Shown here piece after piece: positions 43,974 to 49,611 of a stretch of DNA of 64,000 nt; the stretch's first letter is position 1; every line of letters starts with the position of its first letter. The DNA is from Selaginella moellendorffii. Taxonomy: Eukaryota; Plantae; Lycopodiophyta. Location of the stretch: contig NW_003314264.1 of assembly GCF_000143415.4 (NCBI RefSeq), positions 3,047,710-3,111,709 on the forward strand. The letters are read 5' to 3'. Under the pieces are notes generated by a model. It saw nothing but the letters and a program-made list of their open reading frames with translations. It had not been told where the DNA came from and did not search any database. The position numbers were made by a program, and so were the translations under genes.

Positions 43974-45431
43974 CTATGGCGCGGAGCTACGATCCGGTTG
44001 AGCTATCAGTTGCTGGAGCGTCATCTCGTGGCAGAGTTGGAACGAATCGCCGGACCAAATGGACTTCGCCAAGAACTCGTTGGCACGGTCAGTCGGATGA
44101 AACTCGTCCCACCATACGTGGGTGCTTGCGTTCTGACAGGCCATTTCTGGGAGCAAGCACATCAGCCACCCTCCGAATCGTCCCATACCACAGCACGCGA
44201 CGGTTGCAGTCTGGAAACCTGAGATTTGTTAAGGTGATCAGATTTTCACAAGGAAGAATTTTAGAATGGTGCATACGTACCAAAGCTCGAAGGATTTTGG
44301 ACGATCGGGAACAAACCGTCGTATATGTCGCAGTAGATAACGTCCAGATCTGTGTGGCTTTCATACATCTTCTCCACTTCGACTCGTAAAGCGTTGTTGT
44401 ATTCCTCCACCATGAAGTTGATCTCGGAGATACAGCTGCCCGTTTTGCTGCCGTCTTCGTATAGAAAGTAAGGTGTGCATCCGAGAGGACCAATACCCAC
44501 GACGACCATTTTACGAACGCCGACATCATACAAGATCTGGGGAGAACGCATCAGCAAAGCATAAACGCTGTCTAGACCAGTACCTTGAGCTGTGAAACCA
44601 GCGTTGCTACGAGCAAGTTGTTGAAGTCCAGTGGCGAGATGTCAGATTCTACACCGGAGACGTTCCTCAAGTAGTAGTGAATGAAGTCGTTGCTTCCGAT
44701 GGAGATGTAGTGCAGAGATCTGGACATCAACTTGCGAGCAGCTTCTCGTCCGTGATTAAACACCAGTTGGTCTTTGAAATCAGACACTTGCTGGATCTGT
44801 TCGACCAGAGGAATGTGTTGGCCCTGTATGGTAAAACACCCGAAGCCTCAATGACTTGTATTCGAAGAACAAAGAGAAAGAAAAATTACCAGGTCGCCAC
44901 CACTTTCACTGAGAATTCCAGCCCCAGCAGAAGCGAAGTTGGCACCGTGTCGCATGGTAGTGATGTTAAGTCCGCTCAGGAAAGGAGCCGGGAAAGGAAG
45001 CCCGATGAACTTTGCTGGAAAAAAAAAACACAAAAAAACCAGGCTATCAGATAATGCTTAAACCAAACGTTACCAAGGTAGTCGATGCTCAAGCGACCAT
45101 TGCTAAATCGTCCAGTCGGCTCGTGAGTGTCGAAATCCTTGCCATACGGAGGAATATCGGCTCTGGCCAGCGTCCTGAGGAAATTGTTGTTGCCGACATC
45201 GACAGTGGAGTCGCCGTAGACGAAATACGCTGGAACGAGCGGTACTGCGGCATTCTCCTGAACCAGCGGCTGATCTTGAGCATGAAAGAGCTGCGCGAGT
45301 GCAAGAATGCAAACTAGTGCGAGAAATCGAGCTGCATTTTCAGGAATTTGCCTCAGATATCCAAGAAACCGCCACGGCGCATAGCAAAACCAGAATCTTG
45401 AGCGATCGCACGAACCTGGGCCTGGCGCCAT
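43974..45431 (-). CDS. GDSL esterase/lipase (five exons)
   Basis: [39 protein letters not shown]. Confidence 0.95.
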
Positions 45432-45748
45432 GATCAATCCCTCGCGCTCGTCCGCAAAACCCTACCACATAGGCGCGAAATACAAAAGCCCTTTTAGTTT
45501 TATACAATATTCTTGCATCTTTTTAACATTAAGCTCTTGTTTTATCTTTAATTGGTACAATGGTTTTCTATACACTGGGATATTGGATTTGTCCCAAACA
45601 AATCAACACGAAACTCTCGATCGACTTGCGTCTATACGAACGATTCTTCTATCCTCCTTTATCATCGTGCTAACTGGTCGTGAAAATCCTGGCACAAAAA
45701 TACCAAGCACAAAAGAAATCAAGCATCGAACTATCGAGAAGACAACTT

Positions 45749-48033
45749 TCACAGTACCTTGAGCAAAGAGGCATCGTCGTTCGCTTCCTTCGAAGAAGAG
45801 CTGCTTCTCGAGCTCAAGCTTCCGCTGGACGAGTGTTCCCGAGTCAGGTAGAGAGATCCCCTCGTCAGAGTGGAAAAGTCTGGAGGAAATGGATCTCTGA
45901 TCTCGCTGGCGCTGCTCTGAGAAGAATCGGACGTGACTGGAGGACCAACACGGAGCTTGTTGATGCGCTCGAGCCGGTCTTGGACTTCCATGGAAAGATG
46001 GCCAAAGCACGTCACGCAGACGCAAGTGCTGTCGAGGCCGCACCTCCCAACGGGACCATGAGGAGAAATTCGAGTGTGCTTGACGCAAAACACTCGCTGA
46101 CACTCCCGGCAGTAGTGCTTGCTAAATCTCATACGCCAGTCCGTCGGGTTGTACCACCGATCAAAGCGATGCTTGCAGCCATCGTAGTTGCAACTGCAGA
46201 GTCACACGGCGTCGGTTAAGTCCGCTGGTGAAAAAACGACCGAACTCAAGGCTTACCGGTGCCGCCTTCTTTGCTTGAGAGCGGAGGCTTCCAGCTCTCT
46301 CAAGGAACCGCCGGCGCTTCGTTCGCTTTCATTTAGATTCGCAGGCGAGGAAAGAGACCGAGCTTCCACCGTTTGTCCCGAGTCCGCACTGTCCTCTAAA
46401 GCATCCAGTTCGATCGCGCTGGACGACTTCCCCAGTTTGGTGAGGGTGCTGGCCATGCTGACAAATGTTCTCGCTATGTCCAGCTTCTTGCTCTCGTTTA
46501 ACTGGGCGTTTTGAATAGCGGCGAGCATCTCATCTATGGTGCAGTCTGGAGTCGAGTATCCTATAGCGTCACGGAAGCTGTCGCTGGGACTGAGAACTTT
46601 TTCCTCCATGCATTCCGTCGACCTTAGTTGCGGGCACGCTTGCTTCGACAAGATAAAAACCTTCCGCTGTATTGACAGCCATCCCCGGCATAGCGACACG
46701 AAACCACGAGCCAATGTTCTCAGCCAAAAGTTTTCACTGTCCCGAGCCGCATAAACTGTCAAAGTCGCACGCTTGAAGAACTTTCTCAGCACAACCACTG
46801 CGGCCAGCGTCATGCGGAAAAAGAAGCTCTGCCTTGAAAGAACTCCCAAGAGAAAAAGCCCGCCATTGACAGACCATATCCATCCCCAAGGAGTAGTGCT
46901 CGTCTCGACCGATTCTTGCTGCTTGAGGTTCACCACCTTCGCACCATGAACTAATGGCGCAGGAACGAAGTCCGAATTCTTTGCAACCGGATTCAATGTA
47001 ACGGAGCGAGGTGACGCTGTGCAGTTGGTGATAGTAACCCACTCGGACGGACCATGACCACCCCAAGTTTGCATCCTGTAAGAATAAGCCTTTCCCAGGA
47101 ACAACTCGCCGCTGTCAAAAAACGAAGTCTCTTTCGTATCGGCCAGTGGCAACCACGCTGATGCTGCCCCGGACCACCTATAGAGCCGATACTTATGAAA
47201 CGGTGGATATCCAGCAGTCGCCGGAGGCTCCCAGTTGATCTGAATGCCACCACAACTCGAAGGTTGGCAACCCATTCCCTGAGGAGCACCGGGAGTGGTT
47301 CCAAACCCGAAGATCAGACGGACAATGGCACCTGTTATCTTCCTCCGGTGCAACGAGCTCGACACTCCAAGTTCTTCCGCAAGAGCACGGCCTTCGTTCT
47401 CAATGAGCGAAAGGAAGTCAAGCCCGTCGATGGCGTTTCGTTGGAAGGCATCCGCATACTGTGGAAGCTGCAAGCCGTGTGAGACCCAGTTCACAACCGT
47501 ATCAGCTGTGAGCATATTTTGCAAGTGATCCTGTTAGAGTTTGACACGGTAAGTGCTACGTAAAGCCAGAAAAAAAAAATCAACGATTCACCTTCATCTC
47601 CTCGGAAGAAATTGTTGTTCCTCCATAGCTAAACTCAAAGTTTGGCCCAAGAGGAGGAGCATCCCTTGACGAGCCCCCGGCCTCTTCTTTAACATCAGAC
47701 GAAGCGTCCAGTTCGGACAGAAACTGGACCACAAATAAAAAGAGTGGTGTTGAAAAATCTTCCAAACAAGTAGCGCATACCTTAGTCGCTTCATGACGCT
47801 CGATCTGTCCATCCCCGTCTCGATCGACCGAGCAAAAGAATTTGTGTAGATTGTAAATCGTGCCTGTCTCACACACACACACGAAATCCCTGAATGAGAA
47901 CGCGAATCACTGCTCATTTCGGACAGGATGCACCTCTGGCGGAATGGCAAGTAGAAATCCTGGCGAGCAGCGCAAGAACTAGAAGAATCCAGAAAATCTT
48001 GGGGCAGCCCCAGCGGCTCATCGGCCGAACCAT
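45749..48033 (-). CDS. Signal peptide-EF-hand-SAM-FN3-TM-FYVE-like zinc finger protein (STIM-like EF-SAM), ~677 aa
   Basis: Exons 48033-47934, 47863-47781, 47723-47592, 47530-46257 and 46193-45749 join in frame through GT-AG introns; EF loop DRDGDGQIERHE; SAM VVNWV...LPQY...HRRKI...IFG. Confidence 0.8.
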
Positions 48034-48677
48034 CTGATCGAATCAGGCCAAAGAGGCAGCCACATTCACCGCTGCGCGATCGCCACAGCGGCGCCAGGAG
48101 CGCGTACCTGGAGCGTCCGGAGGAGGATCGCTGCCCGTGACGAAGCCGATCATCGAGCCGGCCCTCGGCACCTATATACAAGCCTCCATTAGGGAAAGCT
48201 ATTGGGCTAAGTAACGAAAAAGTAAAAGATCGCAGCCGTCCAGCCAGGCATCACGGGCCGTCGATTGGGTCCCTCTTGCCGGTGTTTTAGCCTGGGGGAG
48301 CTGACTCTCACTGGTACATGTGTGCAACGTGAGATCGATTCTTTTCGCTACCTACGTATCCAGCATGGTGGAAAAAGCAATCATCTCTTGACAGCTCTGA
48401 TGTTTACATTGTTCACGAACTTGATTTGGTCAATCTTATCGAACAGATCCAGAAAATGCCTGGAACTCAAACGATAAAAAAGCTTTGATAAAATCTCTTT
48501 CGGTGATGCTATGTGATCACCACCATCGCTACTAGCCGCCTGTACTACACGAAGAGAGCGAGAGAGATCTCGTCCGAAAGGAACGGCTGGGATTGGGCAA
48601 CGAACGGTTGCCCCTTTTCCGCGCCAACAGAGTTTTTGGATCTTTAGGTCAGCCAATCCCGGGAGAAGGATCGATCG

Positions 48678-49611
48678 ATGGCGTCCGCGAATGCGCCCTA
48701 CGCGACGCTGTACAACCAGCCCAAGTACGAGTCGCGCAAGCAGGCGGACTTACCGCCGTGGGAGAAGGAGCAGTGGGCGTGGAAGAAGAGCAAGACGTGC
48801 AACAGCGGCGGACCCAATGTGGGCGCGACGCCCGACTTGATCACGCCCGAGCCGCTACCGCCCGCGGTACCGCCCGCGGTAAGCCCGGTGCCGTGCGCCC
48901 AGTCGGCCCCCTTTGGGACCGAGGAGAACATGGCCAACCACACGGACAAGGTACGCTCGCGACACGTGTTAGGTTTGAAGTAGGGATGTGTTGAGATATC
49001 CCACATGCACTGGCGTGGAACTGGGGCAGGGTGTGGGTATAAAGAGCGAGGGTTCATTCGAGTGATATTATAGAGCCGTGTGGTCAGCGCAAAGCGAACT
49101 ATTCTTTCGCCTTTTACTAAAGAATACCGTGTGCTGGCCACATTAAAGCGGCATATCAAAATTTTTGGGCCGCCTCTGCAAAGGGGCACCAACAAATCTA
49201 AGTCACTAAGAAGGAAAGCCAGTTCTTGGGAGATAGTTCTTGTTCTTAAGATCTGTTCCTTTCGATCTTACTTTGATGTTTTGTCGTGCAGCCTGATGCC
49301 GATATCATTGCGGAGAACAACAGGGCTCCGTGGGAGCGAGAAGAGAGCCCCTACTTCTCCAAAGTGGTCAGTGGATCAATCGAAACCCAATCTAAACAAA
49401 AATTCAAGGCCAACGGTGATGACCCTTTATTGTGTAGTTTATGAGCTCTGCGACGCCCCCGCCGTCTTACCTCCACACCGCGCGTTGGAGGTGATCAAAG
49501 GAAGAAGAAATCGAAGCTCGACATTGTACGGATATAATCATTCCGTACTGTTACCGCTAAGCTGGCATTATTTACCTAGCTTTCTTCGTGCGTGCGCTGG
49601 GACAAGTAAAT
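48678..49611 (+). CDS. Hypothetical Pro-rich protein (spliced; 3' end uncertain)
   Basis: GC-rich exon MASANAPY...NHTDK then GTACGC donor; downstream exon PDADIIAENNRAPWERE. Confidence 0.45.

Follow-up and report, generated by a model that had tools for sequence, protein, structure and literature searches.

A gene on the minus strand of the lycophyte Selaginella moellendorffii, read from position 48033 to position 45662 of the 64,000-nucleotide stretch analysed here (the window; contig NW_003314264.1, positions 3,047,710 to 3,111,709 of the forward strand), encodes in six exons a protein of 683 residues with EF hands, a SAM domain, a fibronectin type III (FN3) domain, a transmembrane (TM) helix and a FYVE-type finger. 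It is very probable that its EF-SAM module is a STIM-type unit, most likely by common descent, with the caveats that the identity is about 20%, that the margin of the SAM score is modest and that the packing of the two domains is a predicted one. The reading that we favour, moderately probable by analogy with STIM, is that of a lumen-facing STIM-type EF-SAM Ca2+ switch placed on a TM protein with a FYVE-type output, which would make it a candidate store sensor. The family to which the protein belongs is an old one with vertical inheritance and has, so far as we could find, not been described.

The comparison with STIM was made against PDB chains and structure libraries. When residues 30-190 were searched as a single sequence against PDB chains, the EF-SAM unit of C. 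elegans STIM was retrieved at E = 1.3e-4 over 137 residues, together with STIM2 (1e-3) and STIM1 (5.5e-3); an isolated SAM (SAMD5) and an isolated EF protein had similar scores in the same search. With a profile of 25 family modules, STIM2 (2l5y, E = 3.7e-15) and C. elegans STIM (6pw7, E = 1.5e-14) were each matched in one stretch, over about 144 of the 154 positions, and calmodulins attained similar E-values only through the summing of several EF hands. With a SAM-only profile the best single-domain scores went to STIM2 (43 bits), STIM1 (40.5) and C. elegans STIM (36.4); SAMD5 came after them with 35.3, and liprins stood high only through the sum of their three SAMs, at about 20 bits apiece. 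The last SAM helix has hydrophobic residues at the positions that, in the alignment with STIM2, correspond to those by which this helix is anchored in the EF cleft of STIM. Positions 1 (D), 6 (G) and 12 (E) of the canonical EF loop are invariant in 25 of 25 family modules. Haptophyte and stramenopile members have a canonical second EF loop; in the green lineage this loop is degenerate, in a manner comparable with the "hidden" EF hand of STIM.

The predicted structure leads to the same unit. An AlphaFold2 (AF2) model of residues 33-185, calculated from an alignment without any STIM sequence, had a pLDDT of 86.3 and a pTM of 0.79, and in it a strand at model residues 66-68 pairs with the strand of the first EF loop (21-23) as in a paired EF hand, followed by a helix. 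The three best Foldseek matches in the PDB were three STIM EF-SAM entries, matched over the full length with TM-scores of 0.64, 0.60 and 0.52. By VIA, the STIM EF-SAM structures were aligned to the model with Z values of 12.7, 9.3 and 9.1 over 129-139 residues, SAM-only matches reaching at most 7.8, and they were the only PDB structures that matched the whole unit. In the Swiss-Prot part of the AlphaFold database the best eight matches were all STIMs (fly, worm, human, mouse, rat and cow; E from 2e-6 to 2e-5, TM-scores of 0.63-0.67), and the next one came at E = 0.03, more than three orders of magnitude beyond them. Shape searches of the AlphaFold database clusters and the ESM Atlas returned STIMs intermixed with members of the EF-SAM-FN3 family. 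The proposal of the initial annotation that EF-SAM resembles STIM as a unit is thus upheld by the sequence profile as well as by the comparison of the model with known structures.

The features that had been recognised in the translation (signal peptide, canonical EF loop, degenerate second EF hand, SAM, FN3, a hydrophobic segment followed by RKFFKR and a Cys/His finger) are all present. The signal peptide occupies aa 1-33, with a hydrophobic peak at aa 5-34, and an N-terminal hydrophobic segment is kept in the homologues. The canonical 12-residue EF loop DRDGDGQIERHE (aa 47-58, positions 47790-47825) has the canonical ligands at 1, 3, 5 and 12 and Gly at 6; it is detected by Pfam EF-hand_1/6 at E = 2e-4 on the exon alone, the single-EF-hand models being just under their cut-off in Selaginella (20.9-23 bits vs 25). 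An acidic, poorly ordered linker (pLDDT 51-66) separates it from the second, non-canonical loop FSYGGTTISSEE (aa 92-103, 47598-47633), which was located by the family alignment and the AF2 model. The SAM (aa 112-181, 47303-47512) is matched by Pfam SAM_2 (E = 2e-9, 37.8 bits with a cut-off of 20.5) and SAM_1 (33.4 bits with a cut-off of 23), has five helices in the AF2 model and is matched in 25 of 25 family modules. The FN3 (aa 186-275, 47021-47290) remains under the Pfam fn3 threshold in Selaginella (E = 0.044, 14.4-15.7 bits vs 25) and scores 28.2 bits in the orthologue P0006; the FN3 part of the family profile matches multi-FN3 giant proteins at E from 1e-45 to 1e-177, and in streptophytes the domain is flanked by an invariant Cys pair, C193/C275. 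The hydrophobic segment and the RKFFKR motif fall within aa 319-358, where the TM helix (aa 319-337, 46835-46891) is followed by two further helices, predicted to be cytosolic (aa 340-402, 46640-46828), all of them with a pLDDT of 85-93. After aa 402 the C-terminal AF2 model is disordered, and then come the finger (aa 531-592, 46007-46192), a conserved helix L..E.Q..LE..NKLR (aa 596-612, 45947-45997) and a Ser-rich tail (aa 620-683).

Considering the signal sequence, the one TM helix with basic residues directly after it and the C193/C275 pair, the protein fits a type I single-pass topology, with EF-SAM-FN3 predicted to be extracytosolic and the finger cytosolic. Hydropathy and the AF2 models therefore bear out, as a prediction, the placing of EF-SAM in the lumen or outside the cytosol. 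In a hydropathy scan of eight homologues, four (Chlorokybus, Tetraselmis, Physcomitrium and the stramenopile-type P0095) had a signal peptide and one TM segment at the equivalent place, and the other four had no clear TM segment. Two TM segments or a hairpin within aa 319-368 were an alternative that we did not retain, given those four homologues and the fact that a zinc finger belongs in the cytosol. At the cytosolic end of the TM helix (P0001 aa 336-343) there is a polar motif, L-S-R-Q/H-S..F-F, of which S337, R338 and F343 are invariant in five land-plant sequences, and an LSRH..FF consensus is retained across 14 Viridiplantae sequences. Such a motif is unusual for a simple anchor and may have a role in transmembrane signalling.

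The shared module does not make the protein a STIM. SOAR (Pfam PF16533) gave no match at E<=1 in five family members, Pfam EF-hand_STIM1 stayed under its threshold, the polybasic tail is absent (the C-terminus is Ser-rich and ends in DFHDQLAR) and the TM helix does not come directly after the SAM, the FN3 and a spacer of about 135 residues lying between the end of the SAM at aa 181 and the start of the TM helix at aa 319. On these sequence features we therefore assign the protein to a separate family that shares the sensing module of STIM and is not its orthologue, and membership of the STIM family itself is not supported. What is held in common with STIM1 and STIM2 (2K60, 2L5Y, 6PW7) is the signal peptide, the lumenal canonical EF, non-canonical EF and SAM in the same order and with no linker, a predicted EF-SAM packing that can be overlaid on the STIM units of known structure (Z 9-12.7, TM-scores 0.52-0.67), a single TM helix, a cytosolic C-terminal effector part and the occurrence in Orai-bearing lineages. 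Unlike them, the Selaginella protein has FN3 between SAM and TM and lacks CC1, SOAR/CAD, the inactivation domain, the Ser/Pro region with the EB1 motif and the polybasic tail, in place of which it carries the divergent FYVE-type finger and the conserved helix that follows; its family is found outside Holozoa, at about 20% identity and under the Pfam EF-hand_STIM1 threshold.

The finger was described initially as FYVE-like, and it proved to be of FYVE type, in a divergent form. Its 11 Cys/His positions are invariant across 19 members, the stramenopile ones included, and in a search of the PDB with the finger profile every match down to E = 0.075 was a FYVE domain (Vps27 at 1e-3, WDFY3, EEA1 and Hrs). 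Pfam FYVE (PF01363) was matched in 7 of the 19 members, best at E = 2e-7 in stramenopile members, which retain the (K/R)RHHCRxC signature of FYVE. The Selaginella finger scores 14.2 bits vs a cut-off of 27.8, reads SKHYCRE and has neither WxxD nor RVC. Taking into account the ligand pattern and the exclusively FYVE matches in the PDB, together with the lack of WxxD and RVC and the score under threshold, we classify it as FYVE-like and not as a canonical FYVE, so that binding of phosphatidylinositol 3-phosphate (PI3P) cannot be assumed. The fingers of Vps27, EEA1, Hrs and WDFY3 (PF01363) have the same cross-brace pattern of paired Cys/His; the green-lineage finger differs from them in its KHYCRE, in the absence of WxxD and RVC and in a longer first spacer, and the family finger in an invariant H-T-x-x-S-P-H-G insert with extra His. 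A further possible likeness is with protrudin (ZFYVE27), an ER-anchored FYVE protein (ER, endoplasmic reticulum) at ER-endosome contacts: a membrane-anchored protein with a FYVE-type finger turned to the cytosol could link the membrane in which it sits to another that is marked by a lipid. Protrudin differs in its hairpin anchor, in the absence of a lumenal sensor and in the presence of FFAT and Rab-binding motifs.

The distribution of the family was obtained from an exhaustive HMMER search with the luminal profile, from cluster look-ups and from word-index searches. Full-length relatives were found in mosses (Physcomitrium, Ceratodon, Sphagnum), lycophytes (Diphasiastrum, Selaginella), gymnosperms (Ginkgo), streptophyte algae (Spirogloea, Closterium, Chara, Chlorokybus) and chlorophytes (Picocystis, Pyramimonas, Tetraselmis, Gonium), and two members are transcript-derived, one (P0023) being sister to Ginkgo with 49% identity and the other (P0028) falling among vascular plants in the tree. 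The named members are annotated as "hypothetical" or, automatically, as "Calmodulin". Tandem double EF-SAM-FN3 modules before the TM helix occur in the labyrinthulid Mucochytrium, in a haptophyte of the Pavlovales and in marine eukaryotes, and most of the two-module members examined have the finger; the shape search added a 70-member cluster from oomycetes that carries fn3 and SAM. A word-index search with region 45-191 of P0087 retrieved family members only. The family tree matches the species tree, which indicates that inheritance has been vertical at least from the origin of green plants onwards. Among the two-module proteins (P0087, P0095, P0083, P0110, P0104, P0105, P0116 and P0034) there are some with an extra N-terminal EF loop, and in the haptophyte two-module protein both EF loops are canonical in each module.

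Orai has been reported in green algae, moss, Selaginella and gymnosperms (PMC7016017, PMC8318260); the haptophyte Emiliania is among the Orai-bearing taxa (PMC7016017), and oomycetes and brown algae appear in the Orai tree in Fig. 8 of PMC11085791. Angiosperms are without Orai, and the Orai lineages mentioned are said to lack STIM (PMC7016017, PMC8318260, PMC11085791). Reviews that appeared between 2011 and 2024 describe Orai as present and STIM as absent in green algae, early land plants, diatoms and others, where another protein must take the part of STIM (PMC8318260, PMC11085791, PMC7016017, PMC11506743); STIM is stated to be absent from plants (PMC11506743) and to have arisen near animals (PMC7016017). 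The phyletic overlap of the family with this published distribution looks good. A distribution parallel to Orai holds insofar as the family occurs in lineages with reported Orai and no angiosperm member was seen among the matches listed; the family also extends far beyond non-angiosperm plants, to chlorophytes, a haptophyte and stramenopiles. In the literature searched we found no description of the EF-SAM-FN3-TM-FYVE architecture or of a plant or algal STIM-like protein, and the mentions of "EF-SAM" in plant papers proved irrelevant to this family. A survey of 2016 noted in Phytophthora infestans a "homolog of STIM-1" with only the SAM motif in common and dismissed it (PMC4820453); that protein may be a member of the family.

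By analogy with STIM1 and STIM2, the binding of Ca2+ by the canonical loop (D47, D49, D51, E58) would allow the EF pair to clamp the last SAM helix and keep the ectodomain compact and monomeric. A drop of lumenal Ca2+ would loosen EF-SAM and lead to its oligomerisation, the clustering would be relayed through the TM helix, with its conserved S-R-Q/H-S..FF motif, to the cytosolic side, and the FYVE-like fingers, once clustered, would show increased avidity, at a contact site, for a lipid of the membrane or for a partner. More speculatively, the compartment could be the ER and the partner the Orai retained in the same lineages.

Several points weigh against this mechanism. On the cytosolic side no part of the sequence resembles CC1-SOAR/CAD; the two juxtamembrane helices, present in streptophytes, are missing from the chlorophyte members (sequences judged by eye), and the finger is the only cytosolic element common to the whole family. 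That finger has KHYCRE in the green lineage, where the R(R/K)HHCR signature for PI3P is lost, and is poorly modelled in the C-terminal AF2 model (pLDDT 39-82 per ten-residue block). On the other side of the membrane, FN3 is typical of cell-surface proteins and the module could face the apoplast instead of the ER lumen; the two-domain packing of EF-SAM is an AlphaFold prediction by a network trained on STIM structures, the SAM score exceeds those of non-STIM SAMs by only 5-8 bits, and Pfam EF-hand_STIM1 (PF25578) gives 14.7 bits for the whole protein and 16.7 for the EF-SAM piece vs a cut-off of 32.2. As to the distribution, genes linked to flagellate cells or gametes have the same phyletic pattern. 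No angiosperm member was seen among the single-stretch matches, the best 150 representatives of one HMMER search and two lossy word-index searches. The HMMER profile included FN3, and multi-FN3 giants fill most of the best 150 matches, among which STIMs and weaker members are not visible, so that the absence from angiosperms is only moderately secure; the word-index searches gave 7 matches each and missed proteins present in the collection, which makes them weak evidence for absence.

The FN3 next to the membrane, a typical feature of ectodomains, is also an argument for an endomembrane or cell-surface receptor or adhesion protein, which we regard as unlikely, if worth keeping in mind. EF-SAM-FN3 would then lie in the apoplast or the medium, at a constantly high Ca2+ that acts as a structural cofactor only, and the finger would serve endosomal sorting or, as in protrudin, the tethering of ER to endosome or vacuole, with neither store sensing nor Orai gating. 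The (K/R)RHHCR of the stramenopile members points to endosomal membranes with PI3P and not to the plasma membrane, and there is neither a SOAR-like region nor an evident ER-retention motif in the C-terminus. The whole EF-SAM unit, however, matches only the STIM Ca2+ switch, and its Ca2+-ligand positions have been invariant over more than 1 billion years, a constancy that suits sensing no less than it suits a structural role. STIM1, moreover, is itself known from both the ER and the plasma membrane.

It is quite improbable that the EF pair and the SAM were joined independently, that AlphaFold merely copied the STIM packing on which it was trained and that a Ca2+-controlled oligomerisation switch is lacking. 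Identity to STIM is indeed only 19-22%, EF-hand_STIM1 is a weak match in 11 of the 25 family modules (best E = 1.2e-3) and stays under threshold, the margin of the SAM-only scores over SAMD5 and ANKS1B is modest, and an LPQY-type motif is found in many SAM domains. Against convergence stand the same order of domains with no linker between the exiting helix of the second EF hand and the first SAM helix, a second EF hand that is degenerate in the same way, and the same topology of signal peptide, lumenal module and single TM helix. STIM SAMs are moreover the best single-domain matches, the hydrophobic anchors of the last SAM helix align, and the pTM of 0.79 was reached from an alignment without STIM sequences.

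A role in flagellate cells (zoospores, spermatozoids), by which loss in angiosperms would track that of motile gametes and the co-distribution with Orai would be incidental, is compatible with any molecular mechanism and is in keeping with the flagellate cells made by the gene-bearing taxa (green algae, bryophytes, lycophytes, Ginkgo, haptophytes, labyrinthulids and oomycetes), but it has little probability in view of Spirogloea and Closterium, conjugating algae without flagellate stages that carry the gene, and of the Selaginella transcript, found at ordinary depth in RNA runs of at least four studies, which does not suggest sperm-restricted expression. The transcript-derived P0023 may, in addition, come from a conifer or a member of the Gnetales, groups without motile sperm.

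Returning to the candidate store sensor, a broader scenario may be drawn, which we hold to be doubtful. An EF-SAM lumenal Ca2+ sensor would have existed early in eukaryotes and worked with Orai, which is inferred for the last eukaryotic common ancestor; EF-SAM-FN3-TM-FYVE would be its form in plants, green algae, haptophytes and stramenopiles, and animal STIM a holozoan derivative that lost FN3 and finger and gained CC1-SOAR. If this were true, store-operated Ca2+ entry would be ancestral and not an animal invention, and non-angiosperm plants would own a working store sensor. The family is in any event a concrete, expressed candidate for the missing sensor, conserved from chlorophytes to gymnosperms and equipped with the module that defines STIM sensing, and it lends itself to direct tests in Physcomitrium and Chlamydomonas, two systems with routine knockouts and Ca2+ imaging. 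Even without Orai gating it would provide the first STIM-type EF-SAM module outside Holozoa and change the account of the origin of that module, and a FYVE-type output would show the same lumenal switch wired to another cytosolic read-out.

The gene is real, transcribed and spliced as a six-exon model. Five open reading frame (ORF) pieces, joined through GT..AG introns of 70, 57, 61 and 63 nt, give an open frame of 677 aa, as had been proposed. RNA contigs of four runs from four different studies were aligned to positions 45600-48200 of the window, and all four of the proposed junctions were present in them. The contigs of three of the four runs contain in addition a fifth joint, 45688|45758, which removes 45689-45757; the apparent stop at 45749 lies inside this intron and is spliced out, and the coding sequence runs on into exon 6. 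The splicing proposed initially therefore stood in its four junctions, and the number of exons, the length and the end had to be corrected to six, to 683 aa and to 45662 instead of 45749. The NCBI model of the same species, LOC9637430 (P0001), has equal length and all of the junctions, with 13 substitutions (98% identity), and is probably the other haplotype of the window copy.

Exon 1 (47934..48033, minus strand as for all that follow) holds the start codon at 48033, the signal peptide and the first base of codon 34, and its junction with exon 2 (47934|47863) is found in RNA contigs of the four runs. The entering helix, the canonical EF loop and the exiting helix are encoded by exon 2 (47781..47863), whose junction is seen in RNA, and the acidic, disordered linker with the second EF loop by exon 3 (47592..47723). 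SAM, FN3, TM helix, the two cytosolic helices and the disordered linker all fall in exon 4 (46257..47530). Exon 5 (45758..46193) contributes the finger, the conserved helix and the Ser-rich tail. Intron 5 (45689..45757) has 69 nt and GT..AG borders (GTACTG...TGCCAG), and exon 6 (45662..45688) supplies the last eight codons, DFHDQLAR, and the true stop, with the same C-terminus as in P0001; Ginkgo and P0028 have a related K(D/Y)(F)H ending. Intron 1 contains a short (CA)n/(GT)n run at 47868-47882, just ahead of the acceptor site.

Upstream of the start codon the transcript has a 5' leader (48034..48182, the RNA contigs reaching 48168-48182) with two short upstream ORFs on the minus strand, one from an internal ATG of the ORF 48043-48171 and the other of 15 codons, overlapping the main start codon; these might affect translation. 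The next gene downstream (44976-45437, minus strand) begins only about 225 nt beyond the stop of the studied gene and presents a signal-like N-terminus and a block typical of GDSL esterases/lipases. On the other side, a divergent ORF on the plus strand (48678-48983, product MASANAPYATLYNQPKYE...) begins about 645 nt ahead of the studied gene's start codon, and the two may share a promoter region.

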